Below, piece after piece: positions 1,585 to 51,417 of a DNA stretch of 64,000 bases. The notes beneath the pieces were generated by a model. The model saw nothing but the letters and a program-made list of their open reading frames with translations, made no database searches and was not told where the DNA came from. The translations under genes were made by a program, and so were the position numbers. Each line of letters begins with the position of its first letter. Within the stretch, counting starts at the first letter, position 1. This stretch comes from Dicyema japonicum (taxonomy: Eukaryota; Animalia; Dicyemida): NCBI GenBank assembly GCA_011109175.1, contig RDEW01000022.1, positions 580,273-644,272 on the forward strand, written 5' to 3'.

Positions 1585-2247
1585 TGGAGTCATGTGGTTC
1601 ACCGGATACAACGAATGTGGAGGCGCTCAGAATGCTCTTAAAGCATCTCGAAAAAGAGCCACTAGCTGTCTTCCACCGGTGGTATATGTCGCCCCTGGTC
1701 GACGGATTACTGGTCTGGCATCAGCTTCTCGGATTCGTGATCTACACAAGTCAAAAGACCGGATCTCTGTTACACAACTAAACGTGAACGGAATTAAAGG
1801 CAAAATTATTGAACATAGAACTCTGATTGTTAAACTCAAAGTTGACATCGTGCGATCGCACTAAGAAACGTGGAGGAGGACTACTTACATTAATCAGAAA
1901 AGACTTAAACTATGAGGACCATACACTCGAAGTGATGAAACCACGGTGATATGCGGTGATTTGAATGCCAAACACTCTCTCTGACTGTTAAATCAGTCTG
2001 CAGATACAAGAGGAAATTTGCTGCTGTCGAAGTCTGGCAATCTGATAATCATCAATGACCCATCAATAAACACAGGAACACCTCAAAGGAACTCTGACAA
2101 TCCAACCTCCCAGATATCACACTCTGTTCGCCACAGCTTTCAACAACAATTAATCGGTCCGTCATCTACGACACCCGAAGTGATCATAACCCTATTCTGC
2201 TAAAAATCAAAGAGAAATTAACAGTGGAACGAAGGAACTTGCATATA
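1585..2247 (+). mobile_element. Jockey/I-like LINE, 5' part (leader + APE endonuclease), split by the pogo insertion
   Basis: Leader motif TGGAGTCATGTGGTTCACC; QLNVNGIKG, CGDLNAKH and HNPILLKI endonuclease motifs; the reading resumes at 5892. Confidence 0.8.
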
Positions 2248-2339
2248 CAGTCAACCCTCTCTATTTGGTGTTCACTATTAAAAAATGGTGATCGTCAAAT
2301 GATTGTGAACATAAAATATTTAAATTTTTATTTTTATAT

Positions 2340-3640
2340 AATCATTTAATCTTTATTTAACAAACAATAAAACAGTAAATATATTTATTAATCAACAACC
2401 TTCCTCGCCTGCCTGTTCGCCAGCCTCCTCAGGCAGGTTCGATTCTGGTTGCTGAAACAACTCCGAGAGCAGCTTGTCTAATTGAACCCTCTGCCCATAT
2501 GGCATCTCAGGGCTCTTCTCCTATACTCCAGTGTCAGGATATCTAAAGTCCGCTTTAATACAGTGGACAGTAGATAGGCCTGGAGCTTCCTATCTACCCC
2601 CAACTGCTTCAGATAACCCTTGTGGTACATTGTTGCAATTCCTTCCCACGTCATTACTATTGGAATAACGAGGACCTTGCAACCAAGCATCTGCCCCATC
2701 TCGTTTGCAAGAAAGTCATACTTCCTTTTTTTCTCCACCTCCACAGTCTGCAAACGGTCTTGAGACGTGATGCCAACCTCTATGATAAGGACTTGGCCAG
2801 ACTCCTTATCGTGTACCACAATGTCCGGTTTATTGTGCTTGACTAGCACCGAGGTACGGATAACACTGTCTACCTTAATTTGGACCCTGGTGTTCTCTAC
2901 TACAGATTGCACCTTATGAGTCCGCAACTTTCTGGTGTGGCGAATACCATACTTATTGCATAGTAGAAGATGAAGACTCCTTACTACCTCGTTATGCCTC
3001 CACACATAGTCGTGGCAGAGCATGGATCCACATCGAGTGGCTAAATGATCAACCGACATGCTCCTTGACTTACAGTGGGGACATGTATTTGTTGATCGAC
3101 CCCAAAAAATATTGCGGTCTTGCATATACGTGTACAACGCCTCCGATCGAGGTGAGTTGTCACCGTATTTTAGCCATATTGTCGACGACTTAAGGTCGAC
3201 ATGTGGGTTGTCCAATGCTCTGAAGAGGACCTTATGAAGGCTTTTTAAGTTGATCTTTTCCATCAAATTATTATATTGTAATTCGATCAACGCCTTCACA
3301 TTTACTAGCCCACCATCATCAACACCATACTTAGCAGACAAAAAAGGTCTGATAGTGCCTAGGTGGGTTGCCCGTGTTTTCTCGGTCGTTATTATGGCGT
3401 GCTTCCTAGCAGACACACTTGACCCAGCTATCAGGGTGTCGTGCATTCGCATTAGGATACGCTCACTTAGTTGGACTACTCCACACAGTCCACGGCCGAA
3501 TTTATCACGGGGTAAATATAGTCCTCTCTTATTGGCTGCCAGCACATGGACATGATTCTCTCTAAGTACTCCACGGATCATAACATCATCCATCATACTC
3601 CTTGGGCTTAAACCCACAACACCTATGTAGTAGTTTAGCA
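2340..3640 (-). mobile_element. R4/Dong-like non-LTR retrotransposon, 3' part (RT end, CCHC knuckle, restriction-like endonuclease)
   Basis: 379-aa ORF 2478-3617 with GRGL, CPHC..H....C, HNEVVR, NKPDIVV, IEVG and EKKRKY motifs. Confidence 0.9.
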
Positions 3641-3699
3641 GCGAACAGCATACTCATTAATGCTAGGAACAAATTCCTTGCATTTTGAGACGTCTTACA

Positions 3700-4300
3700 A
3701 ATAACGCTGCTCTTATTTTATATAATAATAAATATTATATTATTTTAAGAACACCCCACTTATTTAACAAACACAATAAAGTTAATATATTTAATCAACA
3801 ACCTTCCTCGCCTGCCTGTTCGCCAGCCTCCTCAGGCAGTTCGATTCTGGTTGCTGAAACAACTCCGAGAGCGCTTTGTCTAATTGACCCTCTGCCCATA
3901 TGGCATCTCAGGGCTCTGCCTCCTATACTCCAGTGTCAGGCTCTCTAGGGTCCGCTTTAACACAGTGGACTGTAGATAGGCCTGGAGCTTCCTATCTACC
4001 CCCAACTGCTTCAGATAACCCTTGTGGTACTTTGTTGCAATTCCTTCCCACGTCATTACTATAGGAATAACGAGGACCTTGCAACAAGCATCTGCCCCAT
4101 CTCGTTTGCAAGAAAGTCATACTTCCTTTTTTCTCCACCTCCACAGTCTGCAAACGGTCTTGAGACGTGATGCCAACCTCTATGATAAGGACTTGGCCAG
4201 ACTCCTTATCGTGTACCACAATTTCCGGTTTATTGTGCTTGACTAGCACCGAGGTACGGATAACACTGTCTACCTTAATTTGGACCCTGGTGTTCTCTAC
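3700..4300 (-). mobile_element. Second, shorter head-to-tail copy of the same R4/Dong-like 3' end
   Basis: About 3770-4300 is near-identical to about 2370-2900, with a few substitutions and indels. Confidence 0.9.
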
Positions 4301-4344
4301 TATATATATTTTTTTTATAAAATATTTTTTTAACAATTAAACAA

Positions 4345-5150
4345 ATGTCATGATGTGGACTTCGTCTCGCAAAATGGGGAGGCCCTATTGGGATTACTCG
4401 AGACGGCACCAAGAGTATTCGAAAAATGGTCACTAAATATCAACAAAGACAAAACAGAGCTGACAACTTTGATGAGGAAGGAATCTATTCTGGAAGAGCA
4501 TTGGCGAAAGGTTAAAAAGCTGGATCCCTGCTTGGAGATAAAGAAGACATCATTGCACGGAAGATTAAAGCAAATACGGCCTTATACAACTTGAGAAGAA
4601 ATTGGTTTCTAAGAAAGAAGGGCTTGAATCGAGAGATCAAAATTCGACTATACAATTCGTTAGTCAAACCAATACTCCTATATAATGCAAGTTCTTGGTC
4701 ATTAACCCTAAATGACATTGAAAAACTAAACTCCTTCCATCGGAGACAACTACGAAAGATTCATTCGTGCTGGGACCGTATGATAACAAGAAGTCAAGAA
4801 CTATACTCTACTACGTCTTCTAAACCGATTTCACTAGACATCATGGAATTTCATTGGAGCCTATTTGGACACATCCTACAGGGAAATATCGAAACTCCAG
4901 CTAATGTTGCCATGGAGAATACTTTCAAACCGAGGACGTCCGAGAGCATCACTGGCCACGACACTGAATGAAGACCTGAAGAGAATAGGATTATCTCTAA
5001 CTACGGGAGATGACCTGGACTACTTGAGGGATTTGGCTCAGGATCGTGGAAAGTGGAGAAAATTAACTAAAAAAATTAATGTTTGGTACTGCACTGGTTT
5101 TGTCATATCCAATGGCAAGACGTTGTGCTTTATAATAATAATAATAAACA
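4345..5150 (+). mobile_element. RTE-clade LINE, 5'-truncated, 3' end with (TAA)n tail
   Basis: KIRLYNSLVKPILLYNASSW, LNSFHRRQLRKI, LFGHIL, RGRPR and DDLDYLRDLAQDRGKW; ATAATAATAATAA tail at about 5132-5146. Confidence 0.85.
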
Positions 5151-5891
5151 AATGTCAGTTGAGGAAGCCTGCTGCGTGGAACCCTTCTCGTTGATATAAA
5201 ATTATTTAAAATGAATAAATTACACGTTTTACAATAGTTTACATGGTACAAAATCGAAACGCCTATCATTTTTAAAAAGAAGGAAATCATAGAATTTTTC
5301 ATAAACATGGAGATTACACACAGCGTGATTTATCTTTTATGTGCACACTTGATTGAATTTTAAACTAATGATGCCATTGTAGATCACGAAAGTTACAGAA
5401 AAGTTGAAGAAACTCACTCTATTGAATTGCCTGATAATCATAAATCAAACTTGGCTTGAAATATCAGAATTGACAATTACAAATTATTTCAAGAAATTTT
5501 TTGAAAATCCGTTAATACAGAACCTGACAGAAATAAAAGAAAAAGATGATGAAAATTTTATGATTCATGAGAATAATCAAATTGATGATGAAAACTTCAT
5601 ACATAACTTTTTGAGAAAACTAAAACAGCATGGCGAAGTTGAAGAGAAAGATGAAAAAATTCATGTTCCGACACTACATGAAGTTAATGAATAACCAAGG
5701 CGCTCGAATTATGGTTTCTTGAGAATGATTATGAAAGAAGAGAAAAAGTTTACGAAATTATCATCTAATCATTCACAAAAAATATCCGATTACATGAAAA
5801 AATTCTTTGTTCTATTTTTTTGTTCTCTATTGAAGATTAGTGAACATCGTGTTTTTACGTGGACATTTTGTTTCATAGAGAGGGTTGACTG

Positions 5892-7260
5892 TATATATAC
5901 AATCTTGCAAATTGGCAATTACTCCGATCACTTACGGATCAACATTTGGCTAATATGTAGCTGGAAAAACTTTACCTCCCTTGATATGGCGGTTGCTTAC
6001 GGAAGATCTATGGCTGTCCTAAAAGATATGCAGTCTACACGAGTGAGTACGGAAGGCTCTGGTCAAGGAAAGGAACTGTCTCAAAAAGCAAGGATTCGTT
6101 CCTCCGAAGCAAGGATCCGTCTAAAAGTGCTGAACGAGGAAATAAAAGCCAAAAAATTCAAAATCAGAGAGCAAAATGGAAGATCCTTACGTCATTAAGT
6201 CGTAACCGGTCAACGTCTGAAGTCTGGAAAACTATTCGAAATATCTCGAAGGTGGATGAGAGGACACCCAGAAATGACGAATTCATCCAAAAGGACCTAA
6301 ACACCTTAATAAAATACTACGCGAAAATCTCTCACAAAAACCATGAGGACTGACCACCCAAACCGCCGCTAAGAAAACCGAAGCCGCAAGAAAGAAGAGG
6401 GACAATTAACTTATTTCATTGAAAAGGAGGTAATGGCATCCTAAGCCAAACACAAGTAACACATTCACATGGCCCAAACGGAATTCCATAATCCTCCTGA
6501 AACACCTAGGCAATGAGGGAATCGGTACCTTGACCAAAATCTACAACTGGTCGATTAACTATAACTCAATCCCAACGATGTTGAAACTTGCGAACATCCG
6601 CCCAGTATTGAAGTCTGGAAAACCGAAAGAAGACCCAGCTTTCTTCAGGCCTATTTCTCTCTTGTTCTCCATGTCAAAAATTCTGGAAAAGCTCATTCTC
6701 CCAAAAATCACTGAGAGGACCCCCGATAAACCGTTCCAGGATGGTTTCAAAAAGGATCGGTCCACAACAAATTTCCTCAGCTCCCTGACTAACTTTATTC
6801 GATCTGGATTTCTGTGTAAGCCAAGACACCAGAAAACCGTGTTATGTTTACTGGACATCCACAAAGCTTTGGACTCTGTGCTGAGAAAAAATCTAACATG
6901 AAAAATCTACCAATCAGATATCCCCAATAACCTCAAACTCTGGCTTACTAACTTCCTTAGCGGACGGAGAGGAAGAGTGTGCATTGGAAACATTTGTTCT
7001 GTCTCCCGTTTATTCCCAAATGGAGTACCTCAGGGTTCGTCGCTATCACCATTCTTATTCAACTTATTTACGGCTGACATCCCGACGGCGAATGGAGAAG
7101 ACGACCTGTCTCTGGCTTATGGAGACGACATCGTCTTAGCTTCACGGGATCAGAACATCCAAACAGCGACGGGAAGAATACAACAACACCTCGATCGACT
7201 ATTCGAGTGGTTTAATGAAAATCGGATGTCAATCTCTGTACAACTGTTAGGAAAAATGTT
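5892..7260 (+). mobile_element. Jockey/I-like LINE, continuation (linker + RT), degenerate
   Basis: FRPISLL, LEKLIL, FQDGFKKDRST, LLDIHKALDSV, GVPQGSSLSPFLFNLF and AYGDD. Confidence 0.85.
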
Positions 7261-7329
7261 TAAAAAGCAGAAAATACACGAGAATATGCTTGCCCTAAAG
7301 CTTTTTTACGTTCAATGCTAGAGGAATAT

Positions 7330-10955: not shown

Positions 10956-11810
10956 GGTTCCCATTCAAAATGGCTTCCATTCATAACGGCCTCCAATTAA
11001 TTTTTTCAGGTATTAGATAAGTTCATCAATAAAAATCACAAGATATTTTCCAATGTGTTTGACATCTTTAGGTAAAAAAGTCATCTTTTTTAAATCCTAT
11101 AAAAATTGATTTTAAGGGGTCTTATGGGTAAATGGAACATCTTACCAAAATCCTCGACATCTTTAGGTAAAAAATTCATCTTTTTTAAATCTTATAAAAA
11201 TTGATTTTAACGGATCCTATGTGTAAGTGGAACATTATACTAGGGTCCTCGACATCTTTAGGTAAAAAAGTCATCTTTTTTTAATATTTTTATATAACTT
11301 TAGAATGAAAAATTTATTTTCAAATGGAAAAAAAGAAAATAATTATAAATGTTAATAGAATACATATTCTACTAAATTGAATATATATTCTGTCGGATCC
11401 ATATTAAGTAGTTCTTCAACAAATCTCAATATATTCTTAGATAAAGCGATATATTTAGTTATTCTAAGAATTTTTTCTCCATTTTGTAATCTTAAGAATT
11501 TTATCATTATGCCTTTTCATAAGATTAAAAAAAGATGACTATTTACCTAAAGATGTCGAGGACCTTGGCAAAATATTCCACTTACCCATAAGACCCCTTA
11601 AAATCAATTTTTATAAAATAAAAAAATATGACTTTTTTACCTAAAGATGTCGAGACCTTGGTAAAATACCACTTAAAATCAATTTTTATAAGATTTAAAA
11701 AGATGACTTTTTTTACCTAAAAATGTCGTTTCGCTAAAATCTCGTGATGCTTATTGATGAACTTATCCAAAACCTGAAAAATTAATTGTAGGCAATTTTG
11801 AATGGACACG
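10956..11810. mobile_element. Foldback/MULE-like non-autonomous element with long modular inverted arms
   Basis: 9-bp duplication CTATCATTG at 10947-10955 and 11811-11819; termini ..CCATTCAAAAT / ATTTTGAATGG..; 95-bp tandem units on the left arm (11061, 11156, 11251) mirrored in reverse on the right arm; AT-rich non-coding centre. Confidence 0.85.
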
Positions 11811-12950: not shown

Positions 12951-13634
12951 AAAATTTACTTTAGTAATTATTATGAAAAATCTAAGGACATTTTTACGTT
13001 ATGGTCTTTACTTTAAATAATAATAAAGACCATAACGTAATTGCCAGTGATAATAATCACTTTCATTTTTAAACTTTACTAAAACTCGAACTCTGTCCCT
13101 AGCAAATGGAAGAAATCCCATACCGTAATTGTTTTAAGACTTGGTAAACCGAAGGCTTTCCTACGTCTTATCGGCCATATCTCTGAGATGAAAAACTCGT
13201 GCTGGAAAATTAGATCTCATTTGTTTCCTGCCACTTTCAGATCAGAGCGATCTACAACAAGGCACTTCACTTGGTTGATGCAATTCATCTCGGAAGGCTT
13301 AAACGAACCTGTAAAAAAATCTACGGACATTTTTACGGGGATAGGGAAAGTCCGTTTGAAGTCAACCGAGCCCCCAGGTAGTTTAGGTGTGATTGAAGAT
13401 CTGATTTTGCCATGTCCACGTGTCTGTTGCGGTTTGCAATATTTAACTCATCCGAGTAAGCTAAGAGCATTGAATTGCCCTTTTCAGGGAGAGGTTAGTA
13501 GCGTAAGAATAGGTTGAAGAGTGCTGCGGAAAGATATGATCCTTGAGGGTCTCCAGGGCTGACAAAAACTTAAAAACCAAAAGCGGAAGTTCCCATGTTT
13601 CTTGTGAGTCACATAATCGTGAGAGAACCGCCAA

Positions 13635-13915
13635 CAATTCTAGTCACACAGCCAACCTCTCTCCGATACCAAGAAACTAAAAATTGCTATAGGACACCCC
13701 CAAGGTACCATTCACGATGTTTGATGTTCTCAAAAGGTAACATTTCCTCTTCCGCATTATCGTTTCAGAATCACAGTGGAATACGATATTTTGAGAATCT
13801 CTGCTATCTGAAATATGCAAGAAAGATAAGATAATGAAACAGACAGAAAATTCAAAACTTAGAGTACAAACCCCCAAAGCTTCTCCTAGAGCACCTACAG
13901 GGGGTAAACCCTCAT
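13635..13915. repeat. Dispersed repeat, inverted copy of 62893-63170
   Basis: Long reverse-complement match, e.g. CAGAATCACAGTGGAATACGATATTTTGAGAATCTCTGCTATCTGAAATATGCAAGAAA. Confidence 0.9.
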
Positions 13916-14467
13916 CAAATACTTCAAAGCCACTTCAAACAACTTCCGATTTTGAATGAATTAATCAATATGGAAAATCAACTTTTCAGATCAGTTATCA
14001 GAAGGAATCGATGATCCATTAAGGTTTATGTATTAACGGTAAGGTTTGGTGAGGAAGTTGACCCCCCAGCAAATTAGCTACGTGCTCAAAATTGTGACAT
14101 TTCTAGAAAGAATCGAGTTTGTGACAATCGTTCGCGCATAACTAAATAATCGATATAAGTGGACTCCTAATAATATTTGAAATACTCATCTCCCCCAAAT
14201 CGAAAATAAGCGAGGGACTTAAAAGTAAGCTGGATAATCTCTAATGACTGATACAGTAGTAATCCCTTAATGCAGGAGCTTAATTAGTGTAATGACAGAC
14301 TATTTCGAGGTTTGTCGTATAATGCAATCTGCCTCGAGAATGATTTCCATTAGCTCTCGGGGATCTGACATTGTCAGAAATCAATCACTGAACTGTCAAA
14401 ATGTTACATATTTCATTAATTGCTAAGATTTTAAAGGTTAATGTGGTTAATGACAGTGATTACTGCT

Positions 14468-15109
<642 letters not shown>

Positions 15110-17044: not shown

Positions 17045-17260
17045 AACCAAATTAACTAATTCCTTGATCCTGACACGTTCCAACAGAACCCTCACCACAG
17101 CACAGTGATCCGGAGGATATTGTCCGGGAAGCTGAGGTTGATTCCAGAACTTGGAAGCGAAATTTTATTCCGGTTGAATAAATAGATGGATACTTTTGAA
17201 TACCGATCAGACATTGGACGTCTACTGAGTAAGGTGATCCTATGACGCCACCAGAGGGAA
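17045..17260 (-). mobile_element. Short internally deleted LINE derivative (leader + 3' tail)
   Basis: TGGCGTCATAGGATCACC leader (17233-17250), TTCAACCGGA and TCAGCTTCCCGGAC blocks shared with the 44.9 kb LINE leader, then a GGATCA..AATTAGTT tail. Confidence 0.6.
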
Positions 17261-17444: not shown

Positions 17445-17712
17445 CTCTTTAATCCTTTTCCTCTTCCTACTAGAATGGAGTCATGTGATCCACCTGTCTC
17501 AGGTGGGACCCAGTCCCAGGCTGGCACAAAAGATCATTTGCTTTTCTCGACTTCACTGGAGGGGTTTCCACAACTGCAAGGAATGGACGCCTTTTACCTT
17601 GTATGCTGGTTCCGGAAGGACTTGAGTGACGTTGAAGGACTCTGTTTCTGTAACACTGGAAACTGGATACACTTAACTAGTTGTTTCCTTTTAACCTCTT
17701 TCTCGTTAATTT
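17445..17712 (+). mobile_element. Short internally deleted LINE derivative (SIDE-like), same subfamily as 49.7 kb
   Basis: TGGAGTCATGTGATCCACC leader (17476-17494), shared ACTGGAGG(G)GTTTCCACAACTGCAA block and a CTGGATACACTTAACTAG tail. Confidence 0.75.
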
Positions 17713-20450
17713 AATTACTAAATTAAGTGATCTCGAAGGCCTTAGTCAGATTTCTCATTTTCTCCTCGTGCGCCTTCTGGATCCAACACAACTTCTCTGT
17801 GGGGTGGGTGGTTTGGGGATAGGAATTGGAGAGGGGTGATGTATACCCTTCTCATAAGACACGTCGTGGCTGTGTATTGTTGAGAGTTGCACTGCCTTCA
17901 CAGGGTAGCAAATCTTTTCCATTTTGTCGGATGAGATCTTCAAGTGATGAGGGAATTAGTTTTTCTAGTTTCCCGAGATTACTAATAGTAGTGGCTGTTA
18001 AGGCCTGAATGTCCCGGATTCTTTGTTTGTTCGTCCAGGACAGATTGATTCCCATGACGTACAGGCATAGCTGACAGATGGCTCAATGAATTGTTTTTAC
18101 AATAATTTCAAAGCTGTGAAAGGGTTTTAATGCCACCAAAAAAGATTTGATTACCCCTAGCTTTCTTGAGCAGCCTCCAGAGATCGACATGAGATGAAAC
18201 GGACATGTGTGTCGAAGGTGATCTCCAAGATTTTCAGTTTCTTCGTGAAAGGTATTTTTTCTGGTTGATAAATATATCCACTGTCATTTGTCCAAGTCGT
18301 TTGTCTGAAATAAATAAAGACGAAGAAGATTTTTCAGTAGATATATCAGGCCGGTTATAATTTAGCCAAATTTGAATCTTGAAGGTATTCATGTAGTCTT
18401 TCTGATGTCTTTGGATATCTTGATCGCGGGATCCGATTATTGTCATCAGTATATGATATGAGGAAATAGTCTTTATTATCTGGTTGTGGTAAATCGGACA
18501 TGTATATGTTAAATAAAGCGGGTGATAAAGGGGAACCTCGTGAGACACCATTGGGTAGTAGTCTTGAAACTCATTTGGTCCCATCCATGTATACCCGGGC
18601 CTTCTTCCATTGATGAAGTTAGTAAGCCAAAGTTTTTATTGGGGTTGACGGGGAGGCCAAACAATTTCCGGGTTAGGATTTTCCTTGAGACAGAGTCGAA
18701 GGCCTTTTGTAAATCGATCGAGCAAACGACTGTTTTGAGGTGACGAGGATTTGTGTTAAAGCCTTCAATGATAAATTGGTTGAGAGAAGTTAGGTGGGTA
18801 GAAGTTAAATGACCCTTCTGAATCAATGTTGTGAGGAAGAAAAAGGAAGGGACGGGTTATAAGGTTAAGAATTAATTTTTCCAATAACTTTGATAAGGTG
18901 CATAGTAAAGAGATTGGTCGAAATGACGCAGGATTGTTTTAGGCTTCCAGGCTTAAAAATTGGGCGTATAAAGGACAGTTTCAGATAGTTGGAATTGTCT
19001 TCATGTTTATTGAATAGTTGAAAATCACTGTGATTGCATCAATCGCAATAGGTCCAATATGTTTTAGTAAAATACTAGGGATAGAATCAGGCCCACGTGA
19101 GAGGGAAGAATTCATCCTTTTCAAACCCTCACTGACATCTGAATGTGAGATAAAGTTAATCGGCTGGGTTCTCTTCGGTCTTATTGAGGATAAAAAAGGC
19201 CCATCCATTTTCCTGAAAGGTTTGTGGCTTATACTGGCGTAATATTTCATGAGCTCGTTAAGACTGTGCTGATCCGTCTGTTGTCCTTTAAAATTTCTTT
19301 TGGGGCAAATTGTTTAATTTCTCTCCATATCGTCTGAGAAGATTTCTGAAATGGAAGGGAAAATACTAGTTTGTCCCATTTGTTGGATTCAGCTTTTCTA
19401 ATCCTTTTAGATATTTCGTCATTGAGAGTTTTTGTTCGATTTTTCTGTCCGGGGAAGGAAGGTACATGTTTTTTCAGGCGATTCCTTTCTTTAATTAATG
19501 ATTTGGTGTTCTTATCGAGTTTTTCATTGTAGAATTTAAATGATCCGCGGAATGAATGTTCTCCGCGCCATGAGAGTAGTTTTGTTTAAAAAGTCAATAG
19601 CCTCATCTATTGAGGGGAATATCATCATATCAAAGTTAGTAGAGCTTGATCGATGTATTTTGAATAGTCATTCCAGTTTGCTTTTTTATAAAAATGAAAA
19701 GTCTCTTTCTATGGTAAAGAACTTTTTTGATTCGAATAATGATTGGATTGTGGTCGGAAGATAATCCATAATGCACCGTCCAAGATGTGCCCGGTGCAAG
19801 GTATGGGGAACAGAAGGTAATGTCTGAGGACGATGATGCTTCGTTTTCCTTGTAAGGAGTCATAGTGTGCTTCCTGGGGTTGTTGAGGATAGTCAGAGAG
19901 GTGAGTTAGTTTATTAAGGATAATCCTCTTGAGTCTGCTGGATGTGATTTTAACCAGTCTGGATGTTTAGCATTAAAATCTCCACACAATATCAGGTTTC
20001 CGAGCTTGTTTAACTTGGTTAGGTTTAGAGAGACTCTTTTTGGGCAAGAAGATGGAGAGGGGACGTAGATGTTTGTAATGTTGAGAGTCCTGAATCCACT
20101 TGTAATTGATATCCCAGATATTTCCGTGGTCCTATCGTTTGCTGAGATGTCTGTAAATCGAATGTTATTTCTTATAATGAGGAGACCACCACCACGACGG
20201 TTTGAGCGGTCCAGGCGGATGCAGTGATATCCTGATTTCGTTGATGTTTATCTGCAGAATTGAGAGTGGAGGGCCTGGATTAAGTTCAATGTCACCGGGG
20301 AGAATTATCAGGAACCCATTCAACAGAAGGGGATTAAGAAAGGGAAGAGGCCATCGTCCGAAGAGTCCTTCTTCGGATGGGAGGTAGTTAATGGTATTTT
20401 TCGGCCTCCAAAACTTTCATAACTGGTAGACCACATGACGCTACGATTTA
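17713..20450 (-). mobile_element. Near-complete but decayed Jockey/I-like LINE: leader, 2A-like motif, APE endonuclease, RT, 3' tail
   Basis: Leader 20425-20443; GDIELNPGP at 20270-20293 in frame with LSILQININ; GLSSDHNPII, SRGPDSIP, SIDLQKAFDSVSR; 3' CVGSRRRTRRK and GAGATCACTTAATTTAG tail. Confidence 0.85.
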
Positions 20451-22409: not shown

Positions 22410-23560
22410 GATTCGGAATACGGCACAAGGGAAACTTAACTAATTTTATGTGACTTATGCATGTCAAAAGTCTCCCCAAGGATCCTTTGGGATTTTCTGA
22501 ATTGGAAGGGAAGATACTAATTGGAAGGTTTTCTGAATTGGAAGGTCCGTTTTCCCAATCTCTTGTCTGAAGTAAATAGGGTTGTGACGGACTTTTCACT
22601 GCTGACAGTTAGGCGATTCTTCAAAGACGGTCCAGATTTTCTTGCAATCTCGAAATGGCAATCTGGATGTCCTGTTCGAGTGAAATAATGACGATGTCGT
22701 GATATGTTAGAATAATATCATTTTCGGAGTCTGAAGTGGGGAGGTCCGCTGAGATATTTCGGGGATACATCCGACTTCTTATGGTCTTTATGGGATATTT
22801 TCACATAGTATTTTTTAGGTTGTTGAAGTCCATTTGGCTGTGATCTACGATCTTTCATCCTCTTTTGAGGCGTCTTGGATGGTCTTCCAAAGCCTATCCT
22901 CAGTAGTTAATCGGCCAGACTTTTTGAGTTCGTTTCTTTCCTTGGTTAATGCCGACCTGCCACATCCCCTGGTGTAGTTAAGGTGGTGTTTAGGTACAGA
23001 TCTCGCATCCAAGATAGTGCGGTTTACATAAGCGAACACTTTGCCCATTGAAGTGATACCATCCAGGTACTGCAGTAGGTTGTCAGTAGGTGTGCGGTAA
23101 AGTCTCTAGTATGCGCGTTTGTAGTTGAATTGTTTTAGGGACCTCCTCCTAGTTGACGTTTTTCTCTTGATCTTCAAAAAGATCGCATTATGGTCACTTC
23201 TTGAGTTGTAAGTGACTGACCAAGTCGATATTGCCGCCAGGCCGTGAGAACAAAGCGTGATGTCTGTAGAAGTCAGTTGGTCTGACTCCTTGAAGGGGGT
23301 TCTCGTATATTTTGACTGGTCATTCATAATCGTGAAAGGTCCTGTCTGCGAAAGTAGTACTTTTCCCCTTGAATCGGACGGTTGACTCGCCAGCCATAGA
23401 GGGTGTTTGGCGTTGATAATCCGTTTTTTGCGGTGGGCTAGGGGTTCCTGTCTGCGGTAGTATGCGGATGATACGGTTGACTCGCCAGCGGAGACAGTTT
23501 CCTCGGAGGTAAATGTTTAATGGTTCTCTTTGGAGTAACATTAGGTGCCCTCTGGGCGTA
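22410..23560 (-). mobile_element. Jockey/I-like LINE remnant (endonuclease end + linker)
   Basis: STDITLCSHGLAAISTWSVTYNSRSDHNAIFLKI. Confidence 0.65.
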
Positions 23561-23759
23561 ATCAATACTTACAGAATCAATGAACCACATAACGCCACGC
23601 TCTAAAGCTTCTATGATCGACGCTAACTTATTTTTCTTACTTTTGTAAAGAGAACATAATTCTAGCCATTTTGGAAGAGATAGAATGTTCTCAACGAAAG
23701 ACTGTATAGTGTCTTTGTTGAGCAAACTGATGAGATTGAATGTGTCATAGAGATGTGTT

Positions 23760-24010: not shown

Positions 24011-24927
24011 AGTCCTCATTTCTTTTATCTAAGATTTAATCAATCGAATGGATATCCTCAACTAGCTCGTCGACTGGACATTTTGGAGGATATATCGATA
24101 ATTTAACACAAATTACTTTTGATTACAACAAACGGAGTATGCGACCACCAAAAATCGATTTAAAAAAATATTTTTATAAATTTTGGCAACGATTTATGCC
24201 GAACTCAAATGAATTTGAGGGTTTACTGGTTTTGAAGCGGAAAACAGAAATGAGTTATTTTAGAGCGAATGATGCTACGGAAAATTTAGAATCGATTTTG
24301 AAAAAATTTTCTAAGGAAGGAGAAAGTAGTTTGACGAGAAGAATTCATCATTGATCTGTGTCATATCAATCATATCAACTATTCAAGAAAGGAAAATACT
24401 GAGTCGGAGAACTCATGAAATCCGCTATTCACAATCATTCTTATGAGAGGCAGCAGAGACTTGTACATCTACGTTGTGGACATTGGCTATCTCTCGATGA
24501 GAGAGAAGTTCCAATTTCTACCTGACGTAGAAACCAAGACTCGACGTGAAAGGTGAGGAATAAATTTTATTCAGTCCTCCCCAGTTGGAGTGAGAATTAT
24601 CCTTTCTTAGTACCACGTCCTATCGATACGTTTAACACTATGGGAATCCTTCCACTGGAGTAAAAAAGAGAAGGATCTTTTTGGATGTGGCTTTGCATTG
24701 AGCGTCTCCTGAATTAGGTAAATCCAATGACACCTCTGGGAAATGAAGAAGACAAAGTCTTTCGACCGAGTAGATATCGATGTGGGAATCAAATCCAGAT
24801 TCGAGCAACAGCACTAAACAAACTGGTCTAGGGATGACCATAGTAAGTGAAGACGTTCACTGTAATCCCTACGTTAAATCTAAAGAAGGTAAGCCTATTT
24901 ATTAGTACGCAATAAATTTCCGAATAA

Positions 24928-32179: not shown

Positions 32180-32680
32180 ATTAACCAAAAAACATCAATA
32201 GTTAATTTAATTAATCTCGACAGCCTCAATCATTTCTCATTCTCTCCTTGTGCGCCTTCTGAGATCCGACGCAGCTTCTATGTAAGCGGGGTGGTTTGGG
32301 GAATAGAAATTGGAGAGGGGTGATTTATACTTTTTCATAAGACACGTCCTGGCTGTGTACTGTTGGGAGTTGCACTGCCTGCACAGAGAATCAAATCCCT
32401 TCACACTTTGTCGGATAAGGTCTTTAAATGATGAGGTGATTAGTTTTTCTAGTTTCCCGAGATTACTAATAGTAGTGGATGTTAAGGACTGAATGTCGCT
32501 GATTTTTTGTTTGTTCGTCCATGACAGATGATTCCCCATGACGCACAGGCATAGCTGACAGATGGCGATCTGATCGCGGGATCGGACTAATAGGTCATCA
32601 GCATATGCTAGGAGGAAATCGTCTTTATTATCGGGTTGTGGTAAATCGGGCATATATTAAATCGGCGGGTGATAAACCTA
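32180..32680 (-). mobile_element. Internally deleted copy of the 17.7-18.5 kb LINE 3' region
   Basis: LLAYADDLL joined directly to AICQLCL..LSWTNKQ, skipping about 350 bp present in the 18 kb copy. Confidence 0.75.
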
Positions 32681-34551
32681 CCACGTGGTCCCTTGAATTT
32701 ACTGGCGATGAATTTAACTAGAACCATGAGTGCCGAGATCACTTGACTGTCTTTTGCCAGGGAACAAATATAAATTGGTAAATTTTCTGCTAAATAATCT
32801 CCACGTGACTTTGGCGTCTTCATAAATGATGTCTATAACATTGGCTTATAGTTTTCTCTGAAATCTCTTAAGAACGCTTCCATAATAAATAGGAGACTGA
32901 ATTTCCATGGGGGACGCCGAATGTCTTCCGGAAGTATGTGAATATTGCTATGCTAACCACCTCTTTAGTGGTTCTCCCACAGACTCCACTATTGAAATAA
33001 CTATTCATCTACCTGGTTCTTGATTCTGCTGGAGATGATTATAAATAGTGTTGGGGGTAATATTATCGAATATTTAGGGGACCTTTAGGTATGATAGCTT
33101 TATGTGGTATAACTTACAACCTACCTCCGAGAGAAATATGATTGCCCAGTCTCGTCGCTTAATAGTTATACCTCTCACTATTATTCGATTTGAGCCATCA
33201 AAGTCATCTTTTTGTGTCGGTCTTTACTGTTCTGACACAACTCCACCCTATAACCTTATTCATAATTATATTCCTTCCTAATTTCAAGATCCCCCTATGC
33301 CTCTGTTCAATAAATTTATTGGCTTTTCCTTGGGAATTCTCATGGGGGTGATCTTAATATTTCCTTGCAGAATTCTTGATTTTGGTGATCGCTTCCTTCC
33401 ACCATTCTGTGGACGATATAACTTCCAGAGTTTGATGGTTTTGGCCAGGATGATCCTAAACTTTTGTGAGTAGTTTCATAATATGCCAGTTTCTTGACGG
33501 AAGGTCAATCAGGTCGTGCTGCACTCTTCATTACTGGGATTCCGAAAATAAGCTTCACGCGGAAGCCAGTAACAACTATTCTTGAGTTAATGTGCCAATT
33601 GTAGGATCTTGAGCTAACAAGGATCTATCTGGCTGTAGATCCTGATTAAACCCCAGGTTGATCCCTTGTCGCCTTAATCCAAGTGGTAAAATATCTAACT
33701 GAATTTTTTAATGTTGTGTTGCAGATACAGGATGTTATGGTGTTTGAATCGACCATGTATCTGCTTCTCCTGTTCAACCAATGTCGAGCCTACCATATGC
33801 ACTCTACCAACTCTCGCCTTCCAATGTCCACCAATGAATATAGAGTTCCCATGCACATCGGAGGGACGCATAAAACTTTGTTTCCTGTAACTCTCACATC
33901 GGTGGGGGAATAATGCTTATATATAGGAGTTATTGTCGTTGCCATCAATGATTTTTATTACTATGTTGGATTTGATTATTTACATATTTTTAAAGAATTT
34001 TATTCCGTTCCGACGGTAGAAATGGGACGCATTTTCCAAGCATTCGCCACTGTGGAACCCCTTTACTAAAGTAGGAAAGAGAGGGATTCTTTTTAAATGC
34101 ACCAGACATTGGGTATTTCCTGGTTTATTTTGACCCCACTCTTAAAAGTTGAGAAAGGAGCAGAAAAGAATCCTTCGACCAACTAGGTAGCAGTGTTAGA
34201 ATCGAACCCAGAGCTGATTGCGACAGCACTAACCAATACGTTCAGCTCCTAGAAGTGCTTTTTCGTTTACTTAATTTATTTAAGAAACCTCAATATCACA
34301 AAAAAGAATGTGTCAAAGCCAACCGATTAAGTGATCTCAGCTTCTAGTAATTCCCGGACTCTCCTGGAGTAAGCCCCCATCGATCACATCGTCTTCAGGA
34401 AATGTCTTTTAGAATTTCATAGTTGCAGAAAATATTAAATGCTATGGTCTAAATGTGAAAAACTTTATTGGAAAAATGTAAATATTAATAAATAATTTCA
34501 TTAAAAAATATTTTTAAATTATTTGAAAATAGTTATCTTGTGGTTGTTACT

Positions 34552-44092: not shown

Positions 44093-44264
44093 TTTATTAA
44101 AAATAGGTTAACCATACATTAATTATTAATTTATTTACAAAACCTAATAATATATTTTATTTTTAATTTAAAATTTTAACCTCCTCGAGTATGCTCATTG
44201 TGGGTATTTTGACTCAGTTTCCTGCATATAAGAGCTTACATTTACTTCCAACTATCCCTTAGAA

Positions 44265-44460: not shown

Positions 44461-44909
44461 TTCCTTGGTTCTCCTTTATCCATTAGTTATCATAACTGTT
44501 CTCTACATAAATAAATTGTGCCCTCCCTAAGCTATAGCTAATATGGCTCTGTGTAAAAGTGAAGTTTTTTTGTCCCTTAGAAGCTACAAATATTTCATGT
44601 AAATAAACAAAATGTTAATGGACGCAGAACTGATCGAGAGATGCCCATCATTTCTAGGAGCATATTGCGTCGTTAAGGTTGATTTTATTAAAATGACACG
44701 TGTCTGTTGTGAAGAACAAATTCATAGTAAATAACACGTGTTGATTCTGTGAATAAATGTTCTGATCCGATGGTGGCTCTTTCATGCTCCTGTATTTCCG
44801 AAAGTTCACATAAGAGTTCCAGAGATCAGTTAGATGTGTCTGATGTGCTAAGAAAATAGGATATAAATTATTTTTATAATTTAGGTAGATTAAACTATCC
44901 AACTAAAAA

Positions 44910-46760
44910 ACCTGGCGTTATGTGATCCACCAGACAGAATACCCACGGAGGTGCTCAGAGTGCGCGTGACGCACTTCAGAAAACGACCATTTGCTTTCTT
45001 CCACCGGAGAGTAATGTCACCACTGGTCGGAGAATTTCTGGATCGGTATCAGCTTCCCGGACGTGTGCCCCCTCGAAAACAAAAGGACCTGATTTCAGTG
45101 ATCCAGCTCAACGTGAATGGAATCAAGGTTAGAATCTTAGAGATCAGAACACTCATCTCAAAAATCAAAATTGACATCCTACTAATTCAAGACTCTAAAT
45201 TGACTCCGAAAGACTCTACGCTTATTTTTCCTGGATTCAATATTATTCGGAAAGATCGTACAAAGAAATGTGGAGGTGGACTACCAACGATTATTAGAAA
45301 GGGACTCAAGTATCAGGACTGTTCATAAGAAATAAAGAAACTCATTGGAGACGATGAAACCACGGAAATTATTGGAATCTCTGTGAGTTCAACAACATCT
45401 ATATATGTCCTAAGAAGTATTCAATGGCTGACTTATCTACTTTGGATAATATGGGGATATCTTGATCTGCGGAGACCTGAATGCCAAACATCCCCTTTGA
45501 CTGTCAAGTCAGTTTTCCGATGCAAGAGGAAGACTTCTACTCTCGCAGTCTGGAAAACTAATGATCATTAATGACCCCTCGAAACACACAAGAATCCCTT
45601 TAGGAATTCTGAACAACCTACATCCTAAACATCACTCTCTGCTCTCCAACTCTCCCTACAAGAGTAACTTGATCCGTCATATACGATACCAGAAGCGACC
45701 ACAATTTTATTTTTTAAGATCAGGAGGGAGGTATTTTGTGAAAAGAAGAATCCGACCTACATATACAAATCCGCAAACTGGAACCTTTTCCGGATTATTG
45801 CTGAATATCGTTTGGCTGACGTAAATCTGAAGGATTTCTCCTTCCTTGACAAGGAGGTGTATCACATAAATGACATCATTCTGCAAGGGAGAAAAATGGC
45901 TGTCCCAAAAAGACACACCTGCTACACAAGAGGCTTTGAAAAGATTGCTTTGGTCTAGGAAAGAAATAGTCTCAAAAATGCAGGAATTCTCTTAATTGAG
46001 GCAAAACTCCGACTGAAAGCTCTGAATGAAAATATAAAGGCCAAAGAACTTAAGATACAAAAAGCAAAATGGTCACGAGTTCTCACAGCTTTGAACCGAA
46101 ATCAGACAACCGCCCAAGTATGGAAAATCTCTTCAACCTTTTCTTGATTGATTTCCCGACTCCGGAGCATGAGGATGACCTTTTACTGGCTTATGCAGAT
46201 GATATTGTTATTGCATCCAGGGACCAAGACGCTCAGGTCGCCTCGGAGAGATTACAATTACTTGTAAACTGTTTAATCTACTGGTTAAATGAAAACAGTC
46301 TGTCGAACATCCCGGAAAAATCGGTTACGTCACTCCTTACCTCTTTTTTTAATTGCCTTTTCATGAGAGCCATAATATTTATAGCTCCGCATAGGCAGGA
46401 CACACACTTTATTTAAGTAAAAAACAGTTAATTTTAACTAATCGTAGAACCAAGGAATGATCTTCACTTCTTTTTCTTGTGTGTGGGTCCTTTCTAGACA
46501 ATCCAGTTCCGCAGTGAGTACAAAAAGAGCCTTTTCCGTGATAGAAAACTGGATCAAAGGCGATCTAAATTATACACCTACCCCCATGGAAGACCTAAGA
46601 AGAAGAAAAGGAGGCCAAACTCAACGATACCAGAAAATCACTTGTGTTGGATCGAGGGAAGACCACAGGGCCAAGCTGAGAGCCCTATTGAAATTCGCCG
46701 GGATCACATAATTTCTTGTTTTTGTCTTTAATTGTGGTCTATGGAAATAAATTTTAATAA
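44910..46760 (+). mobile_element. Jockey/I-like LINE with leader, endonuclease, a large internal deletion and the 3' end
   Basis: Leader TGGCGTTATGTGATCCACC; QLNVNGIK, RKDR..CGGGL; QVWK fused to LFNLF..AYADD at about 46130; CVGSREDHRAKLRALL. Confidence 0.85.
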
Positions 46761-47341
46761 TTATTTTTTTTGCTTCGCAGGGTAAGGATTATAGAACCGT
46801 CATTAAGACTTGACCGTTTTTAGATTTTTTATGAACCAGCTGAAATTACTCATACTTTATTTTTTATTAACTAAAAATAAATAGAAATGTGACTGTGGGG
46901 TTTTGACACGAGGAAAATTACATACGGAATAGTAGTGAATCTAGTTCCGTTGACGACGACGATTCATTTATCCCATGCGGATGATTTAATTATTGCAAAA
47001 AAAACCGTTCTGCATTTTTCTCAGCCACCAATGATCCACTGAAACTAGATTGAGTGCAGGAGTGGTAGATATCCAAGTTTCATGTAATATCCTACCCAAG
47101 TCAACATGCACGTCGTTCACCTATGACCGGAGGAGTAATGAGAAACTCAAAATCTTGATTGGATACCTTAGTCGTGTAAGATTCCCAATTCATAAGACGA
47201 GACTCAAAAAACCAAGAAATGCATTGGAGTTCCTATTTCAGCTATTGCCACAGTTATTTAGTCTGAAACCTATTTCAAAATGTAATTTAGTTGACCAGAT
47301 AATTTTAATTATGATGCTGTTGTCATCTAACCAACACCGAC

Positions 47342-47960
47342 GTGCTTGTTTGTTGTGGAGGCGTCCGAGTACTGCGGCTCAACGCCATCCCTAATGGAGT
47401 TTTGGGTACGATTCTGGATGGAGAATGCGTCCATATTGGGATCTCATTACGAATTGGATTAAAAATATGTGTTCCGCCTACATGCCGATGCGAAGACCAG
47501 ATTGACTGTTTTGGTCTGCGCCCACTATCTTGCACGAAGAGTGCGGGCAGATCTCCTAGACACAAGGCTTTGAACGAAGTCGTTAGGCGAGCTTTGGACG
47601 CTGCCGGACATCTTTCTATGCTCGAACCAGCCGACCTTTCCAGAAGTGACGGGAAATGACCAGATGGGATGACCATCTTCCCCTTTGAAGCTGAAAAACC
47701 TCACCGACACATTCGCCCCTTACAACCTACATCAGAGTGTCTCTGGAGGCTGATCTTCCGTTGAGAAGGCTGATGGTCAAAAGGGCAAAGGTCTTACCAA
47801 AGGATTTTTTAGTTTTTCCTCTCGCGGTTGAAACGTCTGGTTCCCTTGCGCATGCAACGCTGGAATTCTTGATTTGTCTAGGGAATCGGATTTCTGCACG
47901 AACAGGAGATACCCGTGAGCGCTGCTGGGTATTATCTCGCTCGCCTTCCTGAGAGGGATA
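47342..47960 (+). mobile_element. CRE-clade non-LTR retrotransposon 3' remnant (zinc knuckle + PD-(D/E)xK endonuclease)
   Basis: LNAIP..LGT.LD, LRIG, C.C...D..G..PLSC, RHKALNEVVRRAL, EP..L.RSDGK*PDG and FPLAVETSG. Confidence 0.85.
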
Positions 47961-49699
47961 GTTACTCAGTTTGACCTTTTTGTTTATTTTATTTTGTTTT
48001 AACAATAAATGAATGAAACTAGTAAAATATTCAAAAAAAGAATTAACTAGAAATTTATAGTCGCCGTCATAAAAAATAAAATATTGATTATCATCCTGGA
48101 GTTCTTCGTCTCTAGGACGCCTGAGATAGCCAAATTTGTGCATCTCTTTTACGAATTTGAGAGTACACTTAGATAATCACATTGTCGACTCTTCGTCTGG
48201 TGTTCAGCAAGTTGAGTCTTTTTGAGCTCTCCTTTTCTCCATTGCTATTGACCTTATTATTCAGAAGATCTTGGCCTCTTTTAATATTTGATACCTCGAC
48301 AAAGGAGTGATTGTTGGGAACGCCTTGATTATCGACGCTTTGGAAATCGATATTCCTGATCTGTTAGACCTCGGCCTGCAAGTGAATATGCAGAAGACAG
48401 AGATCATGAATGTTGGCTCTCCACAGGACGAGTTTTTCATTGTCCGAACCTGCCTTTAGGCCTTGTTCCCTGATGCGAGTATAGTCGAGTCTTCTGACAC
48501 TTTTCTTTATGGATGCTCTCTATTCTTGTTTGGGATGCAAAAGCTTACGAGGAGAAAAAATCGACTCGTAGTTAGTTACTGATTTTTATTGAAACACTTT
48601 TCATCACTAGGTATGATTAGAAAGGTTGTACACGTGTATGCAAGACCTCAATATCAACATGCCTGTAAAAGTGAAAGCTGGGACATACGCTATAGCAATT
48701 ATCAGTGAATGCTAATATACCTATGGATAGTTACTGACCTACTGACTTAATTGATGTCGTCCATTGGATGGTTTATCACGTAAGCTGGTTCTCAAAGACA
48801 TTAGTGACGAAGGATTATACGATTTTTGATGGCAGATACTTGTCGAAATTGGAGGTGGGTAAAACTTATTTGGATACAATCACGACCAGCATTGGCACTT
48901 CTTGGGTGACTTACTTTTGACAATTCTCTATGCAATTTATTTGGAAGATGCTTTGAGGGACTTCTGAAAGAAATGGGTCACATAATCGAACGTCTAGTTG
49001 AACTAGTCTCTGAGGCAATATAGATTTTGTCTCCGACGATGCACAGTACTTATTTCAGTGTGAATAGATCCACATATTTTTTGAAAATATGGTAATTTAA
49101 AATATCAAAGATAAAACTGAAAAACTGAGCTTATTTTGATTGAACTTCACAGGTTAATGAAAAGTGGAAATTCATTTAAAAAAGAAAAGAAGCTCGGTTC
49201 GCTTCTGAGAGTCGCTGAGGACATTGCTCGTAGAAGAACGCTGGTATTTTGTTATTCAAAAAGATGTAGAGTATTAATGATCTTTTTTCTGATATCTAAA
49301 CAGGTCCCACTGTATAACTCAGGAACGTATAGAACAGATCTTAAGAGACTTGATGGACAGCAGTCAAAGAAGAGGAGAATATGTTGAAGGGGAAAATCAC
49401 TTAGTTCATTTATTTCTGATATTTCTAATTAATTTGTTAATGCTAAAAAAAAGTTATTACGGGGGGCGATAAATTATTGACAGAGGCGAAAATTATTTAT
49501 AGGGACGATACGAAAAAAAGGTTGAGAAACACTTGTAGAGTAATAACTAGACAATCTAAGTTCTATAATGCTAGAATTTTTTTATTTTATTTTATTGTTA
49601 AATAAAATAAAAGCAATTTTACAACGTTTTTCATAAAATCACGTGCTTGTGGTGCTTTGTGGCTAATTGGTTGAAGTTTCAGTTTTGTTCGTCTGTTCC

Positions 49700-49885
49700 T
49701 CCTCTTTCTTCCTATTAGAGTGGCGTCATGTGATCCAGTGCCAGGCCGGCACGAAAAAGGATCATTTTCTCTCCCCCACTCCACTGGAGGGTTTCCACAA
49801 CTGCAACTATGGACGTCTTTTACCCTTTAAACTGGATGCACTTAATTAGTGTTTACTTAACTTCTTTCTCTTTAACTTTAACAAC
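49700..49885 (+). mobile_element. Short internally deleted LINE derivative (SIDE-like)
   Basis: TGGCGTCATGTGATCC leader at 49721; body shared with the 17.45 kb copy; CTGGATGCACTTAATTAG tail. Confidence 0.75.
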
Positions 49886-50109
49886 TTTATTAGCAAGAAA
49901 AAATTAAAGAGGGAGTTATTTGGCCTCATGCCGCAAGTCCTGCAAACGCTTGGACTCTTCTCTGCGCTCTCAGGCCCCTTTTATCGTTTATTCTTGCTGC
50001 AACATACGAGTAACTTATTTCTCGATGTGTCCGAGGTTAATAAATAATTAAAAAGCGATAGCTAATATGGATTCTCGGAAAGTGCATTGTTTTGGTCATA
50101 AACCCTATG

Positions 50110-51417
50110 AAAATGTTAGCGTGGTGTCATGTGGGTCACCGTAAAAAATGTCACACATTCCAAATTAGAAGAGAAAGAGCCTCTCCCTTTCCCCCATCTA
50201 TATGGACTTACATTTGTGATAGTTCCCCAGACTCAAACTTATGTTGTGTGGAGACATTGAAAGCAATCCTGGCCCTCAATGTGAACGGAATCAGAAGAAG
50301 GTCCTAGAACTTCGGGCACTCGTTGCAGAAATGAACGCTGATTTTGGACTAATCCAAGAATCAACCAACCACTCCAACACCTTCATCTCCCGGATACACG
50401 GTGATCCGTAAGGATCTGGAGAAAAGCCGCGGTGGAGGCCTACTCACTATTGTGAGGAAAAATATTGCTTTTACCGACATAAGCCCTCAAGTTGCAAATC
50501 TTTTGGACCCAGATTGTACTTTGGAGCAGATTACTATCAAGTTCTAGCTATTCCCTTCTTTCTGGATTACCTTGGTCAATGTGTACATCTTTCCACAAGG
50601 GTTCTGTCCAACTTCCTATGTTTTTCAAATATTCCGCTTTTCCTGACTGAAGAATTTACTAATATGTGGCGATCTCAACGCTCGTCATCCCTTGTGGCTA
50701 ACTTCACAGTCTGCCGACAACCGAAGTGAACACTTTGCAAATTGCCTTAAGGACATGATTGTCCTAAATGACCCTAACGTCCATACGAGGACTCCACTAA
50801 GAAGCACAGATGGTTGTAGATCCCCAGATTGGACGTTATGCTCTCCTTCATTGGCAAGACTCGCTTCGTGGAATTTGAGTTATGGTTTTTCCAGTGACCA
50901 TAACCCTATATCTCTACGTCTAAGAAGGATTTTGGTGGAGACGTATGCCCCAAACTCAAGTGAAAAAATTCAAGAATTATCGCAAGTCAGACTGGACCGG
51001 CATTAGTAATCATGTCGATGATGTGTTGGACAAGGGTCTGTCATTGGGAATAAGTTCAATGACGAGGCTCCAAAACTTATCATTGGGACAATCCAAAAAG
51101 CCGACAAGATTTTCATTCCTCGCTCGTCATGTGCAAAATTTGACCCTACTTTAAACTCACGCACCCTTCAGCTCATAAAACGAAGAGATTTTTTAAAACG
51201 ATCCAAACTGATGGACATAAACTCCTTGGGAGTAATCAGAAGACTAAACAAGGAAATCAATCTGAGCATTAAAGAACATCGGAACCAGAGATGGGGTCAC
51301 TTTGTCAATCGCCTAAATAAAAAAGAGCTCATCTTTCCGAATTTGGAGAACTCTGAAGCATGTCAATATCGTGTTGGAAGACGATCACGAGGTAGGAAAG
51401 CCATCTCTAGGAAATGA
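50110..51417 (+). mobile_element. Jockey/I-like LINE 5' part with leader, 2A-like motif and endonuclease
   Basis: TGGTGTCATGTGGGTCACC; LKLMLCGDIESNPGP (50253-50276); LNVNGIR, CGDLNA, SPDWT and SSDHNPI. Confidence 0.85.

Follow-up and report, generated by a model that had tools for sequence, protein, structure and literature searches.

This study asked why one short leader sequence recurs, in recognisably similar form, both at the 5' ends of long interspersed nuclear elements (LINEs) and inside short repeats that resemble short interspersed nuclear elements (SINEs) in a single stretch of Dicyema japonicum DNA (contig RDEW01000022.1). The stretch, called the window here, is 64,000 nucleotides (nt) of eukaryotic DNA with a G+C content of 31-44% across 2-kb intervals; it is rich in decayed retroelements, and pieces of open reading frames (ORFs) match endonuclease and reverse-transcriptase domains. 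Helices occur at homologous places in the LINE and SINE-like copies of the leader, two of them (P2 and P4 below) show covariation, and the fold is strand-specific, belonging to the sense RNA. Judging from sequence, we lean towards the view that the leader is a diverged pseudoknot of the hepatitis delta virus (HDV) type that fronts LINEs and has been carried into SINE-like repeats, and we regard it as a candidate ribozyme fold only. A preliminary description of this DNA had suggested an undescribed motif; on our view it would not be an undescribed class, but a variant of the known HDV-type fold.

The motif had been placed at 1585+, 17250-, 17476+, 20443-, 44913+, 49721+ and 50122+ (copies a to g, in that order), and all seven sites were verified, with the common pattern T-G-G-N-G-T-Y-A-T-(G/A)-(T/G)-G-R. 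A degenerate 15-mer of the motif matched five times in the window, where 0.11 matches were expected and none of 100 shuffles reached five. A profile built from the seven sites and searched with nhmmer added three further copies, h at 24735- (E 7e-8), i at 23597- (E 2e-5) and j at 34138- (E 1e-3), bringing the total in the window to ten, namely five LINE 5' ends (a, d, e, g, i) and five short SINE-like repeats (b, c, f, h, j). A covariance model run over the window with filters off gave no copies beyond these ten, and an 18-bit match at 57210 proved not to be a copy. Searches were also made outside the window. The leader ORF of copy a, in a profile-free search of 1.84 billion representative proteins, gave only two low-complexity matches; word-indexed protein searches with the leader/endonuclease ORF of copy e and with a reverse-transcriptase ORF gave none; and the 42 metagenomic matches of a 19-nt motif, about the number expected by chance, were mostly on GC-rich contigs and lacked downstream similarity. 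Because no outside copies were retrieved, the whole analysis rests on ten decayed copies in one window.

The core of the motif pairs, as had been proposed, with a strand that follows an A-run. This helix, P2, joins GUGRUYC to GRRYCAY, and it was the only consensus helix that RNAalifold returned from the ten-copy alignment. Taken as seven base pairs (bp), it had 85.1% of its cells paired, compared with 36-55% in slid registers, and four of its pairs changed on both sides (11 cells), a count reached by none of 500 shuffles. The changes run from U-A to G-C at position 4, from G-C to A-U at position 6, and from U-A to C-G at positions 8 and 9. LINEs carry G-C where the non-coding repeats carry A-U, that G being the middle base of a tryptophan codon, and the A-C mismatch reported at 44.9 kb (copy e) turned out to be this same G-to-A change, which converts TGG to TGA. 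The pairing at 50.1 kb (copy g), described as weak, is indeed so (5/7). The helices of the module contain about 20 G.U pairs, at which the opposite strand would have mismatches, and since P2 is rich in them, the fold belongs to the sense strand. A structured RNA had also been inferred; that the leaders share such an RNA on the sense strand, and not just an N-terminal peptide, is supported by the non-coding SINE-like copies, which read ATG TGA and yet keep the helix by compensatory changes. The supposed burial of the AUG did not hold: its G opens P2, and the other two bases are unpaired.

An HDV-like topology, suggested in the preliminary description, remains the best fit, but the helices had to be renamed, since the covarying helix fits P2 rather than P1. 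Assigning it to P1 was tried and rejected: the cut would then fall inside the AUG, GGNGUY would be unexplained, and the A-run would stand at the place of the P3 3' strand. With anchor-based parsing, six copies (a, e, i, h, b, c) followed the nested double-pseudoknot order of the HDV type, P1-P2-P3-P1'-P4-P2', with fixed spacers, in a model derived on these same sequences. A shared hairpin seen in a MAFFT alignment was spurious, with SINE GGAGACGCUCA set against LINE CUCAG, and anchor-based parsing replaced it. The module is 77 nt long in the LINE family of a, e and i, and 61-65 nt in the short repeats. From 5' to 3' it comprises U(-1), the P1 5' strand GGNGUY, the junction J1/2 (AU), the P2 5' strand GUGRUYC, a single A, the P3 5' strand CCN and the loop L3, and then the P3 3' strand NGG, one base, the P1 3' strand GRYGYY, CA, a variable P4 hairpin, the junction J4/2 (C-R-A-A-A-A) and the P2 3' strand. 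J1/2 and the first G of P2 together form the LINE start codon, 6 nt before which lies the predicted cut, U/GG.

In the six parsed copies, P1 (GGNGUY with GRYGYY, 6 bp) formed 32 of 36 possible pairs (89%), compared with 22 of 36 or fewer at any slide. It opens with a G.U pair in a, e and h and with G-C in i, b and c. In e, h and b no other stretch of the module pairs as well with the 5' strand as the 3' strand does, and b and h differ at three points of P1, each of which leaves the pairing intact. P3 formed 16 of 18 pairs in the same six copies (89%; at most 12 of 18 when slid), with a third pair that varies between G.U, A-U and U-A, and the 3-bp form is present in a, d, h and c. The P4 hairpin differs in sequence from family to family, and shows compensatory changes within a, e and i, where one position has three pair types and another has two. 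The A-run corresponds to J4/2 and opens with a C, so that C-R-A-A stands immediately 5' of the P2 3' strand; counted by sequence match, CGAA, CAGA or CAAA occurs there in eight of the ten copies and is absent from j and g. A candidate for the catalytic C, which could not be found earlier, is therefore located at the start of J4/2. A relaxed HDV descriptor recovered copy h (P1 GGUGUC/GACGCU, J1/2 AUU, P3 CCU/AGG, L3 of 5 nt, J4/2 CAAAA), and this parse also has the covarying helix as P2.

The LINE copies range from complete to much decayed. Copy a (1585..1662, + strand) has a 77-nt module whose ATG shares its reading frame with the endonuclease start (QLNVNGIK, 1775). Its U(-1) is at 1585, the P1 5' strand at 1586-1591, the AUG at 1592-1594 (AU being J1/2), the P2 5' strand at 1594-1600, P3 at 1602-1604 with 1618-1620 around L3 (1605-1617), the P1 3' strand at 1622-1627, the P4 hairpin inside 1628-1648, J4/2 (CGAAAAA) at 1649-1655 and the P2 3' strand at 1656-1662. 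Copy e (44913..44990, + strand), also with a 77-nt module, is about 70% identical to copy a and has its P2 3' strand at 44984-44990. The newly found copy i (23520..23597, - strand) is of the same family, with identical segment lengths and 77 nt in all, P1 at 5/6 and P2 at 7/7, and the LINE body behind it has an internal deletion. The module of copy d (20391..20443, - strand) is truncated, retaining the P1 5' strand, the AUG, P2 (GUGGU/ACCAU) and P3 (CCA/UGG) but without most of the P1 3' strand and P4, while that of copy g (50122..50183, + strand) is decayed, with the motif and AUG present, the weak P2 already mentioned, and no recognisable P1 3' strand or P3.

The best-formed module is that of a SINE-like repeat, the newly found copy h (24672..24735, - strand; 63 nt), with P1 at 6/6 including a G.U at its base, P2 at 6/7, P3 at 3/3, L3 AAUUC and J4/2 CAAAA. 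Copy c (17476..17537, + strand) has a 61-nt module inside its repeat, with P2 at 6/7, P3 CCU/AGG, P1 at 4/6 and J4/2 CAAA. In copy f (49721..49765, + strand) P2 (7/7), a 5-bp hairpin and CGAAAAA are retained, and an internal deletion of 20 nt has removed P3 and the P1 3' strand. The non-autonomous copy b (17185..17250, - strand; 65 nt) has P1 GGCGUC/GACGUC at 6/6, P2 GGAU/AUCC and P3 at 2/3, and the last of the new copies, j (34083..34138, - strand), is decayed and has lost the P2 5' strand. A separate observation on copy h is that in its minimum-energy fold (24679-24727, - strand) L3 and the P3 3' strand become the partner of the P2 5' strand (UUGGAUU/AAUUCAG) inside P1, in competition with P2 and P3.

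The LINEs fall into a family formed by a, e and i, and the elements of d and g, which carry 2A motifs: PGDIELNPGP downstream of module d (20270..20299, - strand) and CGDIESNPGP downstream of module g (50247..50276, + strand). Four LINE 5' regions can be recognised, by these two 2A-like peptides and by two endonuclease starts (QLNVNGIK), and the module is present at each of them. The ATG in the motif opens the LINE frame as M-W-(F/S/V)-(T/I) in a, d, g and i, and copies a, e and i have GGAQ and LPP in common. The original name of the element, a LINE 5' leader, is apt for the five LINE 5' ends, but in the short repeats the module is internal, not at the extreme 5' end, and stands behind shared upstream parts of their own. 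All five short repeats are non-coding. Upstream of the motif, copies c and f have 70 nt or more in common, and h and j about 95 nt; the upstream part of h (24736..24835, - strand) has in common with j a stretch resembling a tRNA, the sequence GGTCGAARGA and a linker rich in pyrimidines, and the homologous part of j (34139..34240, - strand) contains the box-B-like GGTTCGATTCT at 34198-34208. No tRNA head was called by ARAGORN or Rfam, and the box-B pattern was not enriched. Copy b matches the a/e leader downstream to about +170. The short repeats therefore have the character of SINEs with a LINE-derived body, in that c, f, b, h and j each contain an internal segment with homology to the 5' regions of LINEs a, e, i, d and g in the same window. 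Target-site duplications, sought in order to fix the 5' ends of the elements, were not found.

A second helix crossing the first had been described in three long copies. The strings GGCG/CGCC, GGUG/CACC and GAGGCC/GGCCUC do exist, but the helix is unsupported as a general feature. It uses P1 3' bases with a partner downstream of P2, and it holds in a and e, where the first four P1 3' bases match a downstream CGCC or CACC (1622-1625 with 1690-1693 in a; 44950-44953 with 45018-45021 in e) with one compensatory change, while their relative i (23597-) keeps only one of the four pairs. Complementarity between the inside of the module and the sequence downstream of it was at chance overall (mean z -0.14), and only copy d, at 20.4 kb, reached p 0.04; it has its own 7-bp pairing, GGAGGCC/GGCCUCU, with downstream sequence. 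The pairing in a and e may represent an alternative conformer that competes with P1. An outer helix between TGGCGUCAU and a downstream GACGYC was good in f only, was at chance overall (mean z +0.15), and was rejected.

Many observations weigh against an HDV-type fold. The helices were chosen on the same sequences in which they were then counted, the covariation of P1 is not significant (matched by 63-69 of 500 shuffles) although its complementarity is conserved, copies e, i and b have an imperfect P3 or none, and the two 2A LINEs are without the P1 3' strand and P3, except that d has lost only most of the former and retains a CCA/UGG P3. The earlier failure to find the canonical L3 and P1.1 was confirmed: the bases that follow the P1 3' strand are CA(G/A), with no conserved partner in L3, so that no P1.1 was found, and L3 itself is 5 nt (NWYUC) in SINE-like copies and 13 nt in LINE copies. 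Rfam, including its HDV, CPEB3 and drz families, gave no ribozyme match at the gathering score or at E<=10, for either the whole window or a 551-nt slice holding two copies, and folding energies were ordinary compared with shuffles (z -0.07 to -1.8). A sequence-free descriptor of HDV topology matched 13 places in the window and 3-8 in shuffles, and because it also matches shuffles, topology alone is weak evidence. Lastly, the element 5' end does not coincide with the predicted cut, as conserved sequence lies upstream of U/GG: TTAGAG/CG, six to eight bases, recurs there in a, i, g, c, f and j, and all five short repeats retain upstream repeat sequence. These recurring bases and repeat heads indicate that the copied RNAs had not been cut at that site.

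The main rival explanation draws on the same points. It supposes a plain, non-catalytic stem-loop unrelated to HDV, in which the 7-bp P2 closes a variable loop with one hairpin and an A-rich 3' junction, the other helices being chance, and which serves as a binding site for a LINE protein or a host factor, or in translation control at the AUG. That real covariation is confined to P2 and the internal hairpin, that P1 is not significant against shuffles and that Rfam is blank would all be expected of such an element, and retention in SINE-like repeats, behind heads of their own, suits a cis-acting recognition element better than a cutter (an argument found in PMC5786205). Chance would, however, hardly produce P1 and P3 in specific registers (both 89%) at corresponding places of LINE and SINE-like copies, together with spacers of 1 nt, a P3 of 3 bp and a C-R-A-A that abuts the P2 3' strand. 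This model also assigns no role to GGNGUY, which is strongly conserved upstream of the AUG. We give the stem-loop an appreciable but minor chance of being the correct explanation. It is improbable that the conservation involves no RNA function at all and reflects only start-codon context, an N-terminal peptide (MW.T ... K.TI..LPP) and DNA promoter sites (a TGGCGTCA like the cyclic AMP response element, an E-box-like TCATGTGA), shared among the repeats by descent. The open frame in a, d, g and i and the GGAQ and LPP of a, e and i would fit such an explanation, the motif is similar to TGACGTCA and to the TCATGTG M-box, and CACGTG is three times over-represented in the window. But the helix covaries even in copies that have an immediate TGA stop and no frame, its G.U pairs make it strand-specific, and a DNA site would leave the matching strand 20-55 nt away unexplained. 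As to CACGTG itself, the window has 25 occurrences where base composition predicts 8.2, with CATGTG/CACATG at expectation; copy e is preceded by two of these sites, at a distance of 180-220 nt, and copy f by one, 80 nt upstream.

At the other extreme, the module could be a fully active, canonical self-cleaving ribozyme, either HDV-like or a twister variant, that defines the 5' end of the element. The topology fits, as do the G.U or G-C at the base of P1, the U at -1 and the C in J4/2, and the c/f hairpin CCAG-UCCCAGG-CUGG resembles the P4/L4 of twister (table in PMC8501958). We nevertheless consider this very unlikely, since P1.1 and the canonical L3 are missing, no Rfam twister or HDV family matches, and in all copies that allow a judgement the cut is preceded by conserved bases and whole repeat heads. 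An assignment to twister was rejected on its own account: the L1, L2 and GAGGG strands and the T1/T2 pseudoknots are absent, GAGGG does not stand beside the helix, and only the L4-like loop of c and f remains.

Under the diverged HDV-type interpretation, the fold would descend from the self-cleaving ribozymes that head other non-LTR (long terminal repeat) retrotransposons. In a LINE it would cut read-through transcripts back to a point 6 nt before the AUG and make that AUG, at the J1/2-P2 junction, available for initiation, and it would have entered non-autonomous repeats when LINE 5' parts became SINE bodies. As the core is non-canonical and upstream sequence has been kept, cleavage is probably weak, conditional or lost, with the knot retained as a cis-acting RNA element. 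A stronger version, which we put forward tentatively and think rather unlikely, is that the knot is no longer a cutter and is kept because the LINE machinery or the ribosome needs it as a cis-acting element at the front of the template; the second, downstream partner of the P1 3' strand could then act as a conformational switch. If true, this would account for the recurrence of RTE/Vingi-type LINE 5' regions as unexplained 'middle bodies' of SINEs.

HDV-like ribozymes at the 5' ends of non-LTR retrotransposons, such as R2, R4, RTE, Baggins/LOA and L1Tc, typically have an L3 of about 7-8 nt. They head R2, RTE and L1Tc/ingi elements and also non-autonomous derivatives (PMC3185411, PMC4035085). 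The present module resembles them in helix order, in the 3-bp P3, in the C of J4/2 before the P2 3' strand and in a P1 that starts with G after U, and likewise in its place: the fold stands at the head of the element, and the ORF begins within it or next to it. It differs from them in lacking P1.1 and any Rfam match, in its L3 of 5 or 13 nt, its 6-bp P1 and its A-run-lengthened J4/2, and in the conservation among copies of sequence upstream of the predicted cut. A close parallel in setting is the 77-nt Pr77/L1TcRz, which is common to L1Tc/ingi and to the derivatives NARTc, RIME and SIDER, some of which have disrupted P3 and P1.1 (PMC3185411, PMC3383444, PMC4035085). Here too, a 5' module of about 77 nt occurs on a LINE with an N-terminal 2A peptide and on non-autonomous relatives. 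Sequence downstream of L1TcRz has been proposed to refold the ribozyme (PMC4035085), and the P1 3' bases of a and e likewise match a downstream CGCC/CACC. The two differ in position, Pr77/L1TcRz lying at the very 5' end, with in vitro cleavage at +1, and the present module being preceded in the short repeats by 70-95 nt of shared sequence. They differ also in host, which here is an animal and not a trypanosomatid, and the likeness described is one of fold.

Kojima (2018) found that, among LINEs, only RTE and Vingi 5' regions recur as middle bodies of SINEs, an example being positions 61-127 of SINE2-1_AMi, which match positions 2-74 of Vingi-2_Gav; that work concerned sequence similarity only, gave no fold, and reasoned that a SINE with an active 5' ribozyme in its body would lose its head (PMC5786205). 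The repeats described here are similar in having a LINE 5' segment of about 65-75 nt just downstream of a short-repeat head, and differ in that the shared segment is the pseudoknot itself; copy b, which resembles a bipartite non-autonomous LINE, retains a longer part of the LINE leader. Identity with the Ceph domain was considered and rejected, as the printed 23-nt snippet (PMC5786205) had no match in the window within three mismatches. Twister-variant ribozymes stand at the 5' end of Perere-3 of Schistosoma mansoni (PMC8501958), and the module is like these in having a ribozyme-type fold at a LINE 5' end, an A-rich junction before a helix 3' strand and, in c and f, a similar hairpin loop, but unlike them in the absence of the conserved strands, of both pseudoknots and of an Rfam twister match.

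That HDV-like ribozymes stand at LINE 5' ends, and that LINE 5' regions are reused as SINE bodies, was already known. None of the publications consulted joins the two, and the present case would do so, the shared segment being a delta-type knot with a drifted core. An active 5' ribozyme should harm a SINE because the head would be cut off. A delta-type knot whose core has drifted, but which compensatory changes have preserved in LINEs and SINE-like repeats, offers a concrete and testable candidate for the role of a conserved SINE body. The copies also offer a natural series of how a ribozyme may lose catalysis and still keep its architecture, and the position of the start codon, at the junction of J1/2 and P2, makes a link between processing and translation start directly testable.

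The window holds several other features. Inside or beside the LINE of copy a, a 551-bp segment is repeated 1.4 kb away at 95% identity (2353-2902 and 3760-4302) and overlaps an open frame of 379 amino acids at 2478-3617 (- strand), which had no Pfam match. Segments 17719-18529 and 32203-32676, with 83-86% identity, are probably 3' ends of the copy d LINE family. About 560 nt downstream of repeat j, at about 33520-33581 (- strand), there is a separate match to the topology descriptor, with P3 GCU/AGC and L3 UCCGCGUGA; its P1 and P2 are AU-rich, and it may be due to chance. A unit of about 95-130 bp occurs in direct and inverted orientation around 11.0-11.7 kb (11044-11728), with a further copy at 63277-63394, and a 300-bp segment (13630-13929) recurs inverted at 62873-63170 with 95% identity. 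An open frame of 224 amino acids at 55201-55875 (- strand) encodes an ABC-transporter ATPase domain (PF00005, E 2e-21), and is probably an exon of a host gene.

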